Source: Paragordius varius (lineage: Eukaryota; Animalia; Nematomorpha). From it: 64,000 bases of DNA. Made by a program: the position numbers and the translations under genes. The stretch is taken from NCBI GenBank assembly GCA_964247055.1, contig OZ176055.1:4030001-4094000 (forward strand), given 5' to 3'. How positions within the stretch are numbered: the stretch's first letter is position 1; every line of letters starts with the position of its first letter. Below the pieces are notes generated by a model. That model made no database searches, had not been told where the DNA came from, and saw nothing but the letters and a program-made list of their open reading frames with translations. Positions 259-32,621 of the stretch are shown in pieces.

Positions 259-1090
259 ATGAATATTGATGTGTATAGTAATAACCGGTCAGGCCTGGCC
301 AGCCGCGGTTTGGGTGTTGTGGCCAATAATACAAAGAGAATGCAAAGGAATACGGGATGCCTGTATCTTGCTAGTTTAAATGTTGGTTCATTGAAAAGTA
401 AGTTAAATGATATTGTGAGAATAATGAAAGTTAAACATATTGATATTTTGGCATTACAAGAGACTCGTTACCGCGGAAACGGAGCAAGGACTTTGGAAGA
501 GAATTTTCGACTATATTACTCAGGTGAAAGTGGCGGACGAAATGGAGTGGCAATTATCATTAATCCCAAATTGTCCAATCAGGTTAAAGAAGTAAGACGC
601 TATAACAGCCGAATCATGAATTTAGATATTTTGGTAGGTAACGAGGTCATAACAGTATTTATTATATATGCCCCGTAAATAGGTTTACCAAAACAAGAAA
701 AGGAGCAATTACGAGACTCTAGATAAAAAAATAGTCGCTCTCCCTCAGCTCAGAGTCAAGTTTTTATGTGGGGATTTTAATGGTCATCTTGGTTCAAAAA
801 GGGAATCTTTTGAAATATGACACGGGGGACATTCTTATGGAGAAAGAAACGAGGAAGGAATTAATTTGCTCAGATTTGCACAATCTCACAATTTGGCGAT
901 AGCGAACACGTTTTTCGAAAAAAGAGAGAATCATCTAGTAACGTCATCTAGTAACTTTTAAGAGCGGCATAAACAAATCTCAAATAGATTTTATACTTGT
1001 TCCAAGAGACTTATTGAAGCTTGTAATAGATTGTAAGGTCGTGCCAAACTTAGAGGTTAGTTCGCAACATAATTTACTTATTTGTAAATT
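259..1090 (+). pseudogene. APE-type endonuclease domain of the RTE element, disrupted
   Basis: Premature TAA at 676-678 (YAP*, where YAPQ is typical), later frameshifts, and a local duplication tcatctagtaac at ~930-955. Confidence 0.85.
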
Positions 1091-1600
1091 TTTCGTGAAA
1101 GAAAAGTCTAAACAAAGTGGTTTTTATTCAAAGAGATTAAAATGTATTAAGTGGGAGAAATTATCCGAAAAAAGGCAGGCTTTTATAAAAGAAATACGGT
1201 TATCCGAGGATGGTGGGTTAAATGGTGATTGGGATAAAGTAAGTCAGTTAATCAAAAAGGCAGGAACTCTAGTTTGTGGATTAAAAAGCGGAAAATCTCA
1301 AGTATACAGAGAGGCTTGGCTTTACGATGAAAGAATAATATTGATGTCACGAGAAAAAGGTAAGGCTTTTGACAAATGGAGACATACAAGGAATGATGAT
1401 GATAGAGATAAGTATAAAAGTTTAAACAAGGAATTGAAAAAATTAGTCGGCCAGGTTAAGAAAGAAAAAATGAATTTATTTTATGATGAGTTAAATAGTA
1501 AGAAAGGTTTAAACAAAGTGTATAAAGTTGCGCACCAAAGGAATAAACGCAGGATGGATTTGCCAGGTTATGCGACTGCAAAAAAGGAAAAGATGGAAGC

Positions 1601-3189
1601 TTGCTGTGCGAAAATGTAGAAATATTAAAAAGATGTAAAGAGTACTTTGTGAGTTTAGATGAAGGGGTGGGCGAGATATTCTTGCCAAATACAGTTGAAG
1701 CTACTGATAGACCAATAGAAGCAATTACACAAAAGGAAGTAGAATCTAATTTGTTAGAAATGCCAAACAACAAAGCTGTAGGATCGGACGACATAAATAT
1801 AAATTGTTGGAAAGTGCTTGGAAACTCTGGATTAAATTTTTTGGAGCGTGTATTTAATAAAGTTGTTTCAACGTATGAAATCCCGGTTGAATGGAAGGAA
1901 AGTTTAACTGTGCCTTTATTTAAAGGAAAAGATGATATAAATGAATGTAGTAACTATAGAGGGATAAAACTTATGTCGCACACTATGAAATTGTTTGAAA
2001 AAATAATTGAAAAGCGAATCAGGAAAATGATATCTATAGAAGGAAATCAATTTGGTTTCATGCCAGGAAAGTCAACAGTAGATCCTATACATGCGGTTAG
2101 GAGGTTGATTGAAAAACACATTGAAAAAAAGAAAGAATTACACGGGTTTTTGATTGATATAGAGAAGGCGTTTGACAGGATTCCTAGAGAAACTATTTGG
2201 TGGAGTCTCCGTCGTAAAGTGCCAGAAAGTTATATTAAGTTGTTACAAATAATGTACGAATCACACACCTCCAGGATTAAAACTCCACAAGGTTTATCAG
2301 AGCCTTTTCAATAAAGCATGGAGTCTACCAAGGCTCATCACTCAGCCCCTTATTGTTTATAATTTGTATGGACGAGGTAGCCAAGGTTGTTAATGTGAGT
2401 TCAGGATGGTACTTAATGTATGCAGATGACATAATCATCTTGTCTGATTCATTAATTGAATCAAAGCGAACGGTAAACAGATGGGTTGTTATGCTGGATC
2501 AATATGGTCTGAAAGTAAACAAAGCAAAAACCGAACTTATTACTTTTGGGGGTCCACAACATGAAATGGTAGTTGATGATAGTTGGGTTCTGAAGGGTAA
2601 AGAAAGTTGCAAATATCTGGTAGCTATGTCAAGTGCAGATGGTTCGTTGACTGACGATATTAATTTAAGAATAAAGAGCAGCTGGGTAAATTGGAAGAAA
2701 ATTTCGAGCGTATTATGCGATCGAAATATTGATGTTAGAGTGAAAGGTAAGATTTACAGTTCAGTTGTCCAGCCCTCAATGATGTATAATTCACAGACAT
2801 GGGGTGTCAAAAAATCCGAAGAAAGACATTTTAACGTGACTGAAATGAAAATGCTCAGAATGATGTGTGGGGTAACTAGAAAGGACAGAATCGAGAATAG
2901 ATTTATTCGTGGGAGCACAGATATTAAACCAATAGTGGAAAGAATGTCAAAAAATAGGCTACGTTGGTTCGGGCACATTGAAAGGAGAGATTCTAATTAT
3001 ATTGCAAAAATAATAGATGGTTATATAGTTGAGGGAAAACGAGGACGTGGGCGACCTAAAACAAAATGGATAGATACAGTAAAAAGAGAGGTAGCAGAAT
3101 ACGAGCTTAATGCAGAGGACGCCATAGATAGAGTTCTATGGCGAGACAGGTTGTATAACATGACCGCTCTCACGAGTGAAAACATGTAA
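1601..3189 (+). pseudogene. Reverse transcriptase domain of the RTE element, frameshifted
   Basis: RT motifs through DIEKAFD in 1601-2314; a frameshift near 2310 moves QGSSLSPLLF and YADD into the frame of ORF 2353-3189. Confidence 0.9.
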
Positions 3190-15476: not shown

Positions 15477-15862
15477 ATATACCATTTACAATTCAAATTC
15501 ACCCTTGAGCAATTCAAATTCACCCTCGAATAATTCATATTCACCTTTGAACAATTCAAATTCACCCTAAAAATAAATTGTGTTTTCGGGATAATATAAT
15601 TCATCATTAATATGAAATATATTTTTACGACATAGTTTATTATTTTTTCAGCATTATATTAGTTTTAAACAGAATTTTATATTTAAAAAATATTTAAAAT
15701 AAAGGTAATTTTTAATCTTTAAAAACGCATAATTTATTTTAGGGTGAATTTGAATTGTTTGAGGGAGAATTTGAAAATGGTAAATTTGAATTTTTTAAGG
15801 GTGAATTTGAAAATGGTAAATTTGAATTTTTCAAGGGTGAATTCGAACTGTAAAAGGTATAT
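15477..15862. mobile_element. Foldback-like MITE family B with ~20-bp tandem repeats in both arms
   Basis: TIR ATATACCATTTACA...TGTAAAAGGTATAT; the left arm repeats caattcaaattcaccctt and the right arm repeats its reverse complement. Confidence 0.85.
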
Positions 15863-16267
15863 TTAAAAATGTATTCGGATTTGGCGCTTTGTTCATTTTC
15901 AATAATAACAATTTCCGAAATGCAACACCTAGCAAATACTGATACACAATTAGTCCAAAATGCATATAATTTTTGTCTGAAAATTTTCAATATTTTTGAA
16001 TATAAATATAATATTAATTTGGATCCATAAAAATTTAAACTGACTGGATATAAGGTGGACATACTTTTGAAAATAATAGAAAATAAAAATTGTTTATTTC
16101 TAGGGCTTTGAAGCAGTCTAATCAAAACTCGGGTCTGGCTGGTTAAAACAGCTACCAGATTTTCATACCCAATTTATGTATCATAATTTCTGCAGCAATA
16201 ATGTTATAAAACATATTAGGTGTTGAATTATTGGAATTATTTCAAATATCACTACTACATTACTTTA

Positions 16268-16790: not shown

Positions 16791-17743
16791 CTTAGTACTA
16801 GTTACACTGTAAAAATTATAAACTTTTTCTCTAATAGATGAAAACAATGTTTTGTAATTAGATAATAATGAAAATAACTTTCATTACTGTAATTTATTTA
16901 CGAAATTGCCGGAAGATAATACTACCACTAAGGGTAAACTAGAACAAAAAATGGAAAGGTAATAAAGAGTTAAGTATAATTATAATAGAGACATGGTACT
17001 TGCCTGTTTGGCCTAACTGCATAGAGGAAGCTGCATCCTAGATCAGCTATCATGATGACCAGGGTAACGTTTAGGGATTCATTATAATTAATATAAATTA
17101 ATGGACTAAATATTTACCAAATTTTACAAAAAGGATATATATAATATTTTAGCGATGGACCACATTTCAATTTAAATGGTAAAATACCCCATTCTAGCAA
17201 GTAAAAATTAAGCCACTTGGTATATCATATCTATTTTAAATCCAAAGCATCGTTCAATTTATATCGAATAATATTAACCAAATTATATGGACGCAATATA
17301 TTTGTGTTTAGTATCCAAATGCTTACATTTTAATTTATAAATCTAACAAGCATTGATCTTAAAAAACGAATAATTCAATGCTATCAATGATTGCATATGA
17401 TACCTATAATCAGCGATAATGCGTAGTAAAAATATTTAAAAACTTATGTTCTTGTATATATAATTAATGTTCTCCAAAATTAAACGGTATAATTATTATG
17501 TTGTTAATTTAATAAATTTTATGTTAAAAAAAGACAAATTATTTACCTATTTTATTTTACTGAATTTTATAGTATCATAAAAGCAGATAATTATCATGCG
17601 CTCGCTGTTCAAACAACGATGAGCAAAATGCTGATCTGGTTTTGTTTGTTTAGGGATGGTAAAAGCGTGTATAAATAAGGTATAAACAAATTTGAACTTT
17701 CAATATTTCCAATATTTTTTTATTATTGTTTGTTATTACATAA

Positions 17744-20700
17744 ATGGAAATTTGCCCATTTTATAGTCGAATAGGCGCTTGCAGACATGGTGAAACTTGT
17801 ACAAGGCAACATGATAGGCCTGATTATAGTCGAGTATAATTGTAAATTATTTTTTAGACTATTTTGATTACCAATTTATATATAAATCCCAAGCATGCAA
17901 TCCAATCTCAACGAATAAGTAACAATATTTTTAATTTGAGTCGGAAATTTGCCACAAAATACCACAACTGATGAAGAGGAGCAATCATATTTTGATGACT
18001 TTTTTGAAGAAGTTTTTAAGGAATGTTTTGAAAAGGTAATTTTATTTAATATATTTATTGCATCATTATTCTTGGTAATCTATTATAAAATATGATGCGA
18101 ATTGGTTTTAAAACGATCGCTTAATAGGATTTAAAATTGTTATTGGCTAAATGTTTAAAAATTTAATCGAATTAATTGGTTTTAATTGTTTATTAATGTT
18201 TAACTATAACTTTAATCGGTAAGGCTAATTTAGCAAATACATATTTTGTTTTTTTATTGCTATTTAACCACTAACAATATCTGTTACTTGTTAATGAATT
18301 GTATATAATAATGGTATGAACATTTTTGGAGTTATAGATTGCACATGATGCATCATCTACCTATAAATAAATTACAATTTTACAAAATATATTTAGACTT
18401 TCCGCCAGTAGTTGAATATTTAATATGCAATAATATTTTTAGTCATATATTTAACTATTTCTCCTTCACCCAATGAGTATTGTAAATCGCCTTCAGATTA
18501 AACCATAAATAATTTCAATTAATTTTATATGTTTTTCACACTTTGAAGTAATATTCACCAAAAATATTTTAGGGGGCCAAATAAAATCTTTTTTCTGACT
18601 CAATATCCGTACTTCAAACAGGCAAACATGGCATAAAACATGTGTAGATTTTGATACTTTAAGTAAAAATAAATGAATAGCCAAAGCAAGGGTACGGCTT
18701 TGATTACCCTTGCTTTAGTACATCAATGCTGAATTTTATTTTTGATTATTGAACCCCTTACATATTTTACATAATATTTAATTGAAAACAGGCGTAAACA
18801 TGATGAATTTACTATTTTTCTTAAAGTGTTTATCTATCTTTTAATGGGTTCAATATTGTTATGGTGTTTGAATTATATTTTTTTAATTGATTAGTATGGG
18901 GAGATTGATGAAATGAACGTTTGTGGCAACCTTGGAAAACATTTATATGGAAACGTTTTTATAAAAGTAATTTGATGATCGCATTTTACGCATAACCTTG
19001 AACTGTGACTCATGTTTTTCACATAACAGTTATATGATATACCATTTACAGCTCAAATTCACCCTTAAACAATTCATATTCACCCCTGAACAATTCAAAT
19101 TCACCCTCTAACAATTCAAATTCACCCTTGAACAATTCAAATTCACCCTAAAAATAAATTATGTGTTTTCGAACTAATATAACCCATTATTAATGAGAAA
19201 TATATCTTTATGGCATAGTTTATTATTTTTTCAGTCTTATTTAAATTTAAAACAAAATTTTTATTTTTTAAAAATATATAAAAATAATGGGTAATTTTTA
19301 ATCTAAAAACATATTTTATTTGAGGGTGAATTTGAATTGTTTAAGGGTGAATTTGAATTGTTCAAGGGTGAATTTGAATTGTTCAAGGGTGAATTTGAAT
19401 TGTTTAAGGGTGAATTTGAATTGTAAATGGTATATCTTAATGTTTGATTTTTATATTTATGGATATTTAGAAACAAAAATAAGTTTTTAAATCAAACACG
19501 ATATTTTTATTTTAAATTAAATAAACATTTCTCAAATGCGTTTTTAAAACAATTTAGTTTCAAAGAAGTAAATATGCACAAAAAGCCTACCTTGACCTCA
19601 ATAATCGATGGTTTGGAGGAAGGGCTATGAATGTCGAACTTTCTCCTGTCCTTGATTTTTATGGGGCTTGTTGTCCACAATTTGATCGCGGGTATTTTAT
19701 AAGATGTTTACAGTTTTTTTGATTTTGTACAATTTTGTCGTTTGTAGGCATACAATAAAGAAGGGGCTTTTGATTTGATTTAACATTGGCATAACCTAGA
19801 TTATAATGATATTTTAATGAAGGTGGTCTATATACAAAAATTATATTATCCCTTTAAAAACGGTGTCATACTTTATAAATTTTATTATTCTTCTTCTTAT
19901 TCAAATATAGTTGTTTAGTAAATTAAATACGGATAGCTGCGAATCTTGCTAACGGTAAATTTGAATGTTTTTTAACCTAATAATCTTATATTTTATTTGC
20001 ATGGTATTATGTGTAATATTGAAAATTAAATATTTTTTTATTGGTCTTTAGTCAACAAAGAGTAGGGTCAAAGTTTAATATATCAAATCTTGTTTTTATA
20101 AAATAAGATTTCTGTATTAAGTAAATGCAGGAATTAGTTTTTGTGATTAAATTAAATCCACAGAGCAATGTTTTTTAACTTAGAATGATTATTGATATTA
20201 TATGTTGATTTTTTATTATTTTAGGGATTAATTTAATTATTTCTGCCGATAATAATATTTAAAAATCCTTTTTTATCAAAAGACATAAATGCTTATTGTA
20301 CAAAAATAATCCTCGCTAAAAGGCTATCCAGTATATTTATAATAAATTTTATCATTATTATAAAAATCCAAATCATAACACAATTTTTCTATATAATTTT
20401 AAATCAACACCTAGGCAAACATATTATTCATATTTTATAAATAAGAATAAAACGGTGTAAACAAAAGTCTATTTAATGTGTTCTTTATGAAATAGTAGCG
20501 ATATGCTAGGAGGTATGCATTTATTTCTCAATATTCTACATTATATAATGGGCTTTAATACTTTATATAAAATATTTATTATGTTATCGTCCCTTCTTCT
20601 AATATAGCGAATGTCAACGAGGTGATTTTTGTAATTTTATGCATTTAAAACCCATATCAAAAACGCTCGAAAAACGAATCGAACACTATTTGTCAGAGTA

Positions 20701-21470
20701 TGAACGCCAAATTAAACGTGAATATAAACGGTCCAAACATCATAAACACAGTAGTCGATCATCCAGTAGATCTAGTAGTAGGAGTTCTTCAAATTTTTCA
20801 ACTTCTGCCTCAAGTGATAATTCACATTCGAATGACTCTAGAAAAAACCGTACTTCCAAAAAACGCTCACATAAACATCGAAGCCACAGTGGATCCCGTA
20901 ATGCCCCTACGAGACGAACACCAGATTATGGGTGAAAAACTTATTTATTTTTATAACTCGCTGTATTTTTGATAAATGTTTTTACGTTTCAAAGCATTTT
21001 TTCTTTAATTATGATGTATTTACGCCTATACCACTTTGGAAAAGGCGCAAAGTGGATTTAAAATGCATTATTTTTTATTACTAATTTTTTAAGGCAGGAC
21101 TGTAATTTTCTAAAAAAATATTGATATTTTGACATTTTATAATATATATGGTCTTGATCTTTGATTTTATTATTTTTAATGTAAATTTGCCATTTATTGT
21201 GTACTTAGCCATAAAATTGAAACGATCGATATTGAGAAAGAGGATGATATCGATAATAAAATTGGAGATAAAGATAATATGCAAGATTTCATTGAATCGC
21301 AACTTGATAAAATTCCCAATAAAAGTTTGGTTGCCAAAAAAGGAATGCCCACATCCCCGCCAAAACCTAAGAAAATTAAGAGGGACAATGAAAACAAGAA
21401 CAAAGATTTGAGCCAGCAAACGTCCCTAGTTGCTGCCTATTTTCAACAAACAGATTCTGATTCCGAATAA
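17744..21470 (+). CDS. U2AF1: Divergent U2AF small subunit (U2AF35/U2AF1-like), ~345 aa
   Basis: Exons 17744-17833, 17858-17918, 17941-18035, 18895-18966, 19558-19691, 20608-20931, 21209-21470 (1038 nt, phase-consistent). ZnF1 [20 protein letters not shown]; [51 protein letters not shown]; ZnF2 [20 protein letters not shown]; S/R/K/H-rich tail. Orthologue versus paralogue is unresolved. Confidence 0.92.
17834..17857 (+). other. 24-nt spliceosomal intron
   Basis: GTATAATTGTAAATTATTTTTTAG, phase 0; contains an in-frame TAA; it is the only GT-AG solution joining DRPDYSR to [11 protein letters not shown]. Confidence 0.85.
17919..17940 (+). other. 22-nt spliceosomal intron with GAG acceptor
   Basis: GTAACAATATTTTTAATTTGAG, phase 1; removal restores the frame into [17 protein letters not shown]. 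Confidence 0.75.
19037..19435. mobile_element. Foldback-like MITE family B, young copy (in U2AF35-like intron 4)
   Basis: Perfect terminal ATATACCATTTACA/TGTAAATGGTATAT; 4-5 copies of the ~20-bp unit per arm. Confidence 0.88.
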
Positions 21471-30424: not shown

Positions 30425-31478
30425 ATGTCATTTTGCTTCAATAAGGGTTAAATTTAATTTATATTTTAGGGAAGGACAAAATAACTTTTTTAGCCAAAGA
30501 AGACTTTGAGAAACTACCAAACTTAGACGAAAGAACACAAAAAGCACTTTTTGAAGATGACGATGAGCCAAAAGGTTTGTTTTTTTGTTATTACCAATCA
30601 CACTGATTTATATAGATGGATGGGTGTATTGCTGCAATCGAGGTCGACTTTTTGCAATATTATATTAAGTTTATAAATTTCTGAACCTAAGTTCAAAGCT
30701 TCTTTAAATCAATCGAAATAAGTCTCTTTTAGTTTTTGCCAATGTTTAATCACTTTTAATTTTTTTTCATTATGGACTGAAGAAATCTTATTCATTTCTA
30801 GTCTTTTTTTGGCATAGTAATGATTCAATTCGTTTAAATTTTTTTATTCTAGGTTTAATTGCAAGCGATGGAAGCATAAATTGGAGCTGTCCATGTTTAG
30901 GAAATATGGCTGTGGGACCATGTGCCCAAGAATTTCGTTCGGCTTTTACCTGTTTTCACGATTCTAATGCCGAACCAAAGGGCTCAGATTGCTTAGAAAA
31001 ATTTTCCTCGATGCAAAATTGCTTTATTAAATATCCAGAACTTTATGGAGACATCGAGGAAAAGGGTGATCAGATTGGCAAAATCGATATGAACGAGGAA
31101 AATACCATTAATACAAAAAGTGAAAATAAAACTAATTCTAAATTGAATAATGAATCTCCACCAAAAAATCCAGAAATAAATAATACCAAATTAACACCTG
31201 AAACCACAAAAATATCCGGTATTTATATCTTTTAAACTGATTTTTGATTACTATTTATTATAACAATTTGAATAATAATTGTTGAGTTGTTTACGTATTA
31301 TATATTTATATTTTTCGATACAAACATATATTTTATTTTAGAAACTGAAAATCCAGAGCCTCTAAATGCCGCAAATATGGAAAACATTCGAAAATTTCAT
31401 CCTAAAACAAAAGAGGATCCCGTTCCACCACATGATTCAATCGATCGTTTTGCACCTAAAATATCGCTGTTTTGGTGA
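30425..31478 (+). CDS. CHCHD4: Mitochondrial intermembrane-space oxidoreductase Mia40, ~209 aa
   Basis: Exons 30425-30446, 30470-30574, 30853-31218, 31342-31478. [20 protein letters not shown] matches the animal N-terminus MSYCRQEGKDRIIF; [17 protein letters not shown] (CPC) and twin CX9C motifs. The last exon is less certain. Confidence 0.93.
30447..30469 (+). other. 23-nt spliceosomal intron
   Basis: GTTAAATTTAATTTATATTTTAG, phase 1; retention gives an immediate TAA after MSFCFNKG. Confidence 0.85.
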
Positions 31479-31703: not shown

Positions 31704-32621
31704 TTATAAATCATGGTTTTTATACAAATTAGAATTTGCATCAAAAAAAATTCCTTTAATTAAATCAATGTGGAGACATAAATAAGGTATGTGGTCGTTT
31801 GTGGTTGGATTTATACCATTTAAATTTGTTTGGAAATCAGATATTTCATAAAAATCAAATGTTTTATCTTTACCACTTCCTCGTTCTTTAGCTAATTCAC
31901 CCGTAGTTATGGATTGGAAATATTTTTGATCTAAATCAGTTTGTTTGACTAGTAAGCTTCCTTTCTTATACATTTGTCGTTCGTTATTGTAATTGCGACG
32001 AAATTGTGAGAAAAGTATTTCATTTTTATCATTAGATAGCGTCCCTTCCAAACGTTTTTGAGCTTGAGACAAAGATAAACCACCATCTTGAACCAAAGCC
32101 CAAAATACGGTATTATACAAATTATTAACATGACAATCTACCTGTCTCCATCTCAAATAATCCCATAAAATACGTGTATTAGGATATGCTATGATACGAC
32201 TATCAAAAACAGGTAAAACTTTCAAAGCTTTAGTTTTAAAGAAATGACCCCAAAAATAGGTATAAGCGGATGTAAAAAGACTGCAGACATGGGAGGCAAG
32301 TTTGCAAGCTCTCCGATTAACATAATCTGTGTCACGCGCAAACACAAAACTATATTCATCGCTTTGACCATAGGCACAAATAATATCGGTAAAGGTTTTC
32401 ATTACGTTGTATGCACAAAAATTCATTAATTCAAGGGCTTTTTCATCGTTAGGTTTTTGGAATTCGTGTAAATCAGTAAATTTATGGAAGCTTTTGCCAT
32501 CAATGCGACACACTATGTAACAAGCAGGGAGAATCGTATCAGATAATTCAAATGATTTTACATAATCGTATTTCTTATTCGCAAATGATAAATTTTTTCC
32601 TATTTTGGCCGTTTGATTCAT
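31704..32621 (-). CDS. THG1L: tRNA(His) guanylyltransferase Thg1, 305 aa, intronless
   Basis: KYDYVKSFE, RIDGKSFHKF (first catalytic D), YGQSDEYSFVF (second D), FDSR, WRQVDCHVNNLYNT, KNEILFSQF. Confidence 0.96.
   Translation of the reverse strand: MNQTAKIGKNLSFANKKYDYVKSFELSDTILPACYIVCRIDGKSFHKFTDLHEFQKPNDEKALELMNFCAYNVMKTFTDIICAYGQSDEYSFVFARDTDYVNRRACKLASHVCSLFTSAYTYFWGHFFKTKALKVLPVFDSRIIAYPNTRILWDYLRWRQVDCHVNNLYNTVFWALVQDGGLSLSQAQKRLEGTLSNDKNEILFSQFRRNYNNERQMYKKGSLLVKQTDLDQKYFQSITTGELAKERGSGKDKTFDFYEISDFQTNLNGINPTTNDHIPYLCLHIDLIKGIFFDANSNLYKNHDL

Follow-up and report, generated by a model that had tools for sequence, protein, structure and literature searches.

Organization of the locus

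The window analyzed here, a stretch of 64,000 nucleotides (nt) of AT-rich animal DNA (approximately 26% GC) from Paragordius varius (contig OZ176055.1, positions 4,030,001 to 4,094,000), contains a gene for a member of the U2AF small-subunit family. The gene lies on the + strand between positions 17744 and 20935 and comprises six exons (A to F), the first three of which are separated by two segments of only 24 and 22 nt. These two segments, most likely spliceosomal introns of extremely small size, are the subject of this report.

Exon A (17744..17833, 90 nt) provides the ATG start and the first CCCH zinc finger, and an in-frame TAA at 17741-17743 directly precedes the ATG. It is followed by micro-intron 1 (17834..17857, 24 nt, phase 0, GTATAA...TTTTAG), whose second codon is an in-frame TAA, and by exon B (17858..17918, 61 nt, phase 0 to 1), which encodes the first β strand of the UHM domain. 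Micro-intron 2 (17919..17940, 22 nt, phase 1, GTAACA...TTTGAG) breaks the reading frame and separates exon B from exon C (17941..18035, 95 nt, phase 1 to 0), where helix A of the UHM domain is encoded. Downstream, intron 3 (18036..18894, 859 nt, phase 0) at a conserved position leads to exon D (18895..18966, 72 nt), and intron 4 (18967..19557, 591 nt, phase 0), located after the GNVFIK motif, leads to exon E (19558..19691, 134 nt), which ends in phase 2 and contains the end of the UHM domain and the start of zinc finger 2. Finally, intron 5 (19692..20607, 916 nt, phase 2), also at a conserved position, precedes exon F (20608..20935), which carries the remainder of zinc finger 2, the Ser/Arg-rich tail and the TGA stop codon (20933-20935). 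All of these features are on the + strand, and all five introns begin with GTA and end with AG. The GC content of the micro-introns was 12.5% and 18%, respectively, versus 28-41% in the exons. The original prediction, made from the window alone, had described the 24-nt phase-0 and 22-nt phase-1 segments around a 61-nt exon, the phase-0 intron after GNVFIK and the 134-nt exon ending in phase 2; a direct reading of the sequence bore out each of these features.

A genome-wide search revealed that intron 3 was essentially single-copy and that intron 5 was unique. Transposon content was considered as the cause of the long intron size and was rejected, since introns 3 and 5 consist of essentially unique sequence. 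Short tandem repeats were observed at approximately 19000-19450 in intron 4; they recur on the opposite strand at 15739-16125, upstream of the gene, and in translation they appear as repeated SNSPL-like peptides.

Identity of the window gene

Searches were made exon by exon, and the exons were joined into the spliced protein for local alignments and for the tree. The first CCCH finger (C-x8-C-x5-C-x3-H) in exon A was recognized as Pfam zf-CCCH (PF00642; E=9.4e-8, 32.2 bits), with its ligands aligned. The UHM (RRM-like) domain was identified through exon E, which matched S. pombe U2AF23 (E=6e-8) and the human U2AF35 UHM chains in the PDB, and the alignment revealed the NNRWF tryptophan motif in this domain. 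The second CCCH finger is interrupted by intron 5; its full C..C..C..H pattern was aligned, and the part in exon F scored 20.3 bits against a Pfam cut-off of 20.5. The C-terminal tail was rich in Ser and Arg, as exon F contains consecutive S/R repeats together with stretches rich in K and R. The conserved N-terminal helix encoded by exon 1 of the family (MAEYLASIFGTEKDK) was absent, and no such motif was present in the 3.2 kb upstream. The window gene is thus without exon 1 and its phase-2 intron, and it has exons of 61 and 95 nt where the millipede gene has 67 and 83 nt.

The identity of known representative proteins was at most 68% to exon E and at most 62% for full-length matches. The best and contiguous match for exons A and B was protein P0008 (CAK9301805.1), which, like its sister P0006 (XP_065321134.1), belongs to the horsehair worm Gordionus sp. 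m RMFG-2023. The translation of exon B alone could be aligned to U2AF1 proteins, again with P0008 as the best match. We found that P0008 also begins at the zinc finger and has the derived motifs CPFY, HLYGNV and ACCPQ in common with the window gene. The annotated gene range of this Gordionus orthologue is 160 kb. Two residue changes were located in the zinc fingers. After the third Cys of finger 1, the window gene has T and Gordionus has A, where canonical proteins have S; in finger 2, the window gene and Gordionus have ACCPQ versus the canonical ACCRQ.

A second, canonical U2AF1 copy is present in the same genome, and the nearest relatives of both copies are Gordionus proteins. On these grounds a myxozoan origin of the genome, which had been considered, was rejected, and a nematomorph-like identity was supported. 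In the maximum-likelihood tree, the window protein grouped with P0008 (support 99/97) and the canonical copy grouped with the Gordionus canonical protein P0273 (98/91). A protein search seeded with P0008 revealed no further member of the divergent group beyond this genome and Gordionus. The in-frame stop before the ATG, the lack of the N-terminal motif and the same condition in the Gordionus orthologue together indicate a divergent paralogue and not a canonical orthologue. On these alignments, the window gene is a fast-evolving U2AF1 paralogue that is older than the split from Gordionus. The original prediction had named the gene U2AF1; its placement in the U2AF small-subunit family was correct, but the gene has diverged as a paralogue that lacks the N-terminal helix and is not U2AF1 proper.

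Reading frame and choice of splice pattern

Removal of both segments produced an open frame of 259 codons with zero stops, for which the chance expectation is approximately 5e-9 to 7e-11 at this base composition. The open frame did not point to a single solution. Within 17744-18035, we found 25 stop-free solutions when up to two GT-AG segments of 15-120 nt each were removed, and the alternative acceptor at 17976 was among them. As the frame is not unique, the model in which segments of 24 and 22 nt are removed (24+22) was selected by homology. Against the orthologue P0008, the 24+22 model scored 231, followed by the 24+37 model (205), the 24+58 model (196), the 60+22 model (163) and a model with a single 112-nt intron (145). 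The 24+22 model was also top-scoring against the millipede and Hydractinia proteins. In addition, the spacing between the TIL and FDD motifs was 37 residues in both the 24+22 product and P0008, and both contained a DEEEQ motif that the 58-nt alternative intron would remove. The comparison with P0008 favors the acceptor of the 22-nt intron over that of the 58-nt intron.

The gene might nevertheless be spliced otherwise in this region, using the acceptor at 17976 (58 nt), the donor at 17940 with the acceptor at 17976 (37 nt), or one 112-nt intron (17829-17940) through which exon B is lost. All three patterns leave the frame open. The AG at 17975-76 has A and not G at position -3, whereas micro-intron 2 ends in GAG, and G at -3 is the least favored base at 3' splice sites. 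The 24+37 model was also slightly ahead against the Gordionus canonical protein P0273 (222 vs 217). Set against these points are the lower scores of the three patterns with P0008 and with the millipede and Hydractinia proteins, the loss of either the DEEE motif or the first β strand of the UHM domain, and the abandonment of a position that the 22-nt intron has in common with a 447-nt intron of the canonical paralogue. We consider such patterns improbable. The original prediction had named the 17976 acceptor as an alternative; the frame does remain open with it, but its score against P0008 was lower than that of the 22-nt acceptor.

The window copy could also be regarded as a decaying pseudogene in which the two segments are unspliced, intron-like debris. 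Its very fast evolution (an end branch of 2.4 in the tree), the loss of the N-terminal helix and the fact that searches of sequencing runs and protein collections returned no RNA or protein record of it are compatible with decay. A decaying gene would not be expected to look as this one does, since outside the two segments the 259 codons in AT-rich DNA are without a stop or frameshift, every zinc ligand is intact, as is the NNRWF motif, and five of the five junctions are GTA..AG at conserved positions. Moreover, Gordionus keeps an orthologue with the same derived features. A gene kept since before the Gordionus split must be expressed as an intact frame. We regard a pseudogene as very improbable.

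The canonical U2AF1 copy in the same genome

The canonical U2AF1 locus was identified by a genome-wide search with exon E. It is located on the same contig at approximately 936030-945375 on the minus strand, 3.1 Mb away from the window gene, and it carries the N-terminal MAEYLASIFGTEKDK exon. We found seven coding exons of 44, 149, 95, 72, 134, 96 and 76 nt, separated by introns of 389, 447, 956, 806, 5152 and 1005 nt, with no micro-intron. The 149-nt exon corresponds to the usual 88-nt exon fused to a 61-nt segment, and the canonical copy is therefore without the intron after TFSQ. The spacing around its 447-nt phase-1 intron equals that in the window gene, with exactly 61 nt from the TFSQ point to this intron and 95 nt from there to the next one.

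From this comparison, the 22-nt segment sits where the paralogue has an ordinary 447-nt intron. The 24-nt segment, as judged from the gene structures compared, occupies a site that is ancestral in the millipede and the cnidarian and was vacated in the canonical paralogue. The most parsimonious account would be that the phase-0 intron was retained in the window copy and lost once, in the canonical copy.

Intron positions in other animals

Introns were mapped by an exact protein-to-genome walk on the gene loci of two named U2AF1 proteins, one from a millipede and one from a cnidarian. In the millipede Chamberlinius hualienensis (P0214), introns were found at coding-sequence nucleotides 44 (phase 2), 132 (phase 0, after TFSQ), 199 (phase 1), 282 (phase 0, before YGE), 354 (phase 0, after GNVYVK) and 488 (phase 2), which yields, among others, exons of 67, 83, 72 and 134 nt. 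The sizes of 67, 72 and 134 nt are presumably also those of human U2AF1. In the cnidarian Hydractinia symbiolongicarpus (P0319), introns were found at 44 (phase 2), 132 (phase 0), 202 (phase 1), 282 (phase 0) and 488 (phase 2), together with four others, and there was no intron after GNVYVK. The phase-1 intron follows the intron at the TFSQ site by 67 nt in the millipede and by 70 nt in Hydractinia.

Upon joint alignment, the 24-nt intron of the window gene occupied the same column and had the same phase 0 as the intron at 132 in both species. Introns 3 and 5 matched the introns at 282 (phase 0) and 488 (phase 2) of both species in column and phase, and intron 4 corresponded to the millipede position at 354 (phase 0). 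The 22-nt intron agrees in phase (1) with the intron at 199 or 202, and both fall within one variable loop, where the MAFFT alignment of this indel-rich stretch sets them 4-5 columns (approximately 2-3 codons) apart. At the two sites, the intron lengths were 24 and 22 nt in the window gene, 78 and 60 nt in the millipede and 115 and 570 nt in Hydractinia, and the canonical copy of the same genome has none at the first site and 447 nt at the second.

Other genomes revealed different histories of this gene. The U2AF1 gene of the copepod Eurytemora carolleeae has kept a single intron of 1102 nt in the tail and has lost all others, and intronless U2AF1-like genes were encountered in several cases, among other assemblies and among metagenome contigs.

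The two segments might be real introns that were gained recently at proto-splice sites. The canonical paralogue has no intron after TFSQ, and alignment with the outgroups does not place the phase-1 site at one exact codon, both of which would fit a recent gain. The phase-0 site, however, is identical in column and phase in the millipede and the cnidarian, so that loss followed by regain at the same nucleotide would be less parsimonious than retention with one loss, and the phase-1 site is common to the paralogue. Recent gain is accordingly a very unlikely origin of the two segments. All other introns of the window gene are inherited, which indicates that the duplication was DNA-based.

The alignment of intron positions and phases with orthologues that the original prediction had called for was thus carried out, and the positions corresponded. 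Its proposal that the introns are ancient and shrunken, and are not new insertions, gained support from the sites and phases in the millipede and Hydractinia and from the canonical paralogue. Its further claim that both sites are ancestral U2AF1 intron positions held to the exact column for the phase-0 intron; for the phase-1 intron, it held exactly only against the paralogue in the same genome, and otherwise to the level of the same loop and phase.

A further probable micro-intron and neighboring features

A third micro-intron was identified in the window, in a Mia40/CHCHD4 gene that starts at 30425 (30425-30900). The 23-nt GT-AG intron (30447-30469, phase 1) is the first in that gene, its removal is required for the conserved N-terminus, and the next intron is approximately 280 nt in length. 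On inspection of its sequence, this intron has the same build as the two micro-introns of the U2AF1 paralogue.

This observation bears on the idea that the 24- and 22-nt segments are spurious insertions from assembly or sequencing. Five DNA runs from two studies contain much of the stretch, and the assembly comprises 44 contigs for 110.6 Mb. False insertions would not begin with GTA, end with AG and occupy conserved intron sites, and a third such segment would not be expected in another gene 12.5 kb away. An artefact is extremely improbable.

Several other features were observed in the window. A non-long-terminal-repeat retrotransposon is located at 259-3189 on the + strand, where consecutive open reading frames resembling endonuclease and reverse transcriptase are split over several frames. 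At 31704-32621 on the minus strand, a single-exon open reading frame of 305 residues resembles tRNA-His guanylyltransferase (THG1) and is intron-free beside multi-intron neighbors. Exons encoding immunoglobulin domains are also present, and tRNA and Rfam searches of the window returned no match.

Interpretation and proposed mechanism

The anatomy of the gene, the frame's requirement for both removals, the conservation of intron positions and phases, and the relations to the paralogue and the orthologue were observed directly. From them we infer that both segments are removed from the RNA. Taken together, the 24- and 22-nt segments are, in all likelihood, genuine spliceosomal GT-AG introns that are constitutively removed, ancient in origin and shrunk in size, within a functional, lineage-specific paralogue. 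Both very probably descend from introns that predate the split between cnidarians and bilaterians and subsequently shrank below the supposed 30-base minimum for animals.

Several points weigh against this interpretation. The open frame alone does not fix the model, and the choice among the 25 solutions depends on homology as scored here; the small lead of the 24+37 model with P0273 and the GAG ending of micro-intron 2 point the same way. Where precisely the phase-1 intron falls relative to its millipede and Hydractinia counterparts hinges on gap placement in the variable loop. The end branches of the divergent pair are long (2.4 for the window gene and 1.2 for P0008), and their grouping may owe to long-branch attraction. 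The protein collections contained no same-species protein or transcript product of the window gene. In the search of sequencing runs, none of the five runs that contain much of the stretch was recorded as RNA, and five small runs marked 'RNA?' were nearly without its sequence words.

In the mechanism that we propose, shrinkage would have affected the two 5'-most introns, and the three downstream introns would have stayed at 0.6-0.9 kb. The major spliceosome would recognize the micro-introns across the intron, probably through a GTA as the reduced signal at the 5' site, an A located approximately 11-13 nt from the 3' end as a putative branch point, five or six consecutive T and then the first AG downstream.

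A more far-reaching idea is that the divergent paralogue is a lineage-specific 3'-splice-site factor that co-evolved with shrinking horsehair-worm introns, with its own micro-introns forming an autoregulatory loop. The changed residues, beside the third Cys of the first finger and within the second finger, presumably occupy positions that act as specificity hotspots in the human protein. Under this idea, horsehair-worm introns would be nearly without a polypyrimidine tract and able to end in GAG, as micro-intron 2 does, and expression of the paralogue would depend on machinery that handles its own two micro-introns. We regard this idea as speculative and unlikely to be correct.

To our knowledge, introns shorter than approximately 30 nt have long been thought absent from animals. 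The pair of micro-introns described here would provide a clean, internally controlled example from a nematomorph-like bilaterian, apparently a third lineage. The gene itself serves as the control, since two tiny and three ordinary introns occur together in it, and the millipede has introns at all of these sites and the cnidarian at most of them. The mixed sizes within one gene, together with a paralogue that has 447 nt at one site and no intron at the other, indicate that shrinkage can affect individual introns, in this case the two closest to the 5' end, rather than proceeding as compaction of the whole genome. In practical terms, gene finders that require introns of at least 30-40 nt will break up this gene and similar ones.

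Comparison with known systems

In a survey of 51 genomes (Hadjez et al., Mol Biol Evol 2026, PMC13644364), ultra-short introns (<30 nt) were restricted among animals to myxobolid myxozoans and Dicyema japonicum. In these animals, the 5' signal is reduced to GTa, A residues are weakly conserved and the polypyrimidine tract is short or missing (PMC13644364). The window introns showed three features of this group, as GT-AG segments of less than 30 nt must be taken out for the frame, lie at conserved positions and begin with GTa. Like those of the myxobolids and Dicyema, which measure 22-27 nt, they are animal GT-AG introns between conserved exons, with A residues upstream of the AG. Three differences were noted. 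The myxobolid introns were seen in Iso-Seq reads (PMC13644364), whereas the window introns are known here from genomic sequence. The host belongs to the Bilateria, with a horsehair worm as the nearest relative found, and that lineage is unnamed in the survey (PMC13644364). Unlike the myxobolid and Dicyema case, the tiny introns adjoin introns of 0.6-0.9 kb in one gene. The Gordionus genome paper gives a GC content of 26.9% and never mentions introns, and we found no report of ultra-short introns in Nematomorpha in the literature searched.

The window introns fall into a size class that is also found outside animals. Tiny introns are known from Paramecium (approximately 25 nt) and Stentor (15-16 nt) and from chlorarachniophyte nucleomorphs. 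The window introns resemble these in size class and in their apparent dependence on GT, AG and an A at a set position. The ciliates and nucleomorphs differ in that they are protist systems with almost only tiny introns, whereas two size scales are found here within one animal gene. Tiny ciliate introns are also cited in the animal survey (PMC13644364).

Compared with canonical metazoan U2AF1 genes (the millipede, Hydractinia and the copy in the same genome), the window gene has the same series of phases, 0, 1, 0, (0) and 2, and the same exons of 72 and 134 nt. In vertebrates, U2AF1 contains a mutually exclusive exon pair, exon 3 and Ab (PMC5224494, PMC6821156). Exon B corresponds by homology to the duplicated exon, but it is present in one copy only, with no tandem pair, and a second copy could not fit into introns of 24 and 22 nt. 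The original prediction had stated that no such switch could exist here, which is trivially correct, as the literature treats the duplication as a feature of vertebrates (PMC5224494).

The window gene can finally be set beside a second small-subunit gene of another lineage. Mammalian U2AF26 (U2AF1L4) is a lineage-specific paralogue of U2AF1. As with U2AF26, the window gene appears to be a second small-subunit gene that arose by duplication at the DNA level and kept the parental introns. Unlike U2AF26, it has lost the N-terminal helix and evolves much faster, and its origin was independent. What distinguishes the present case from these known systems is that the putative micro-introns are controlled both within the gene and within the genome, and that the host gene itself encodes a divergent member of a family of 3'-splice-site factors.

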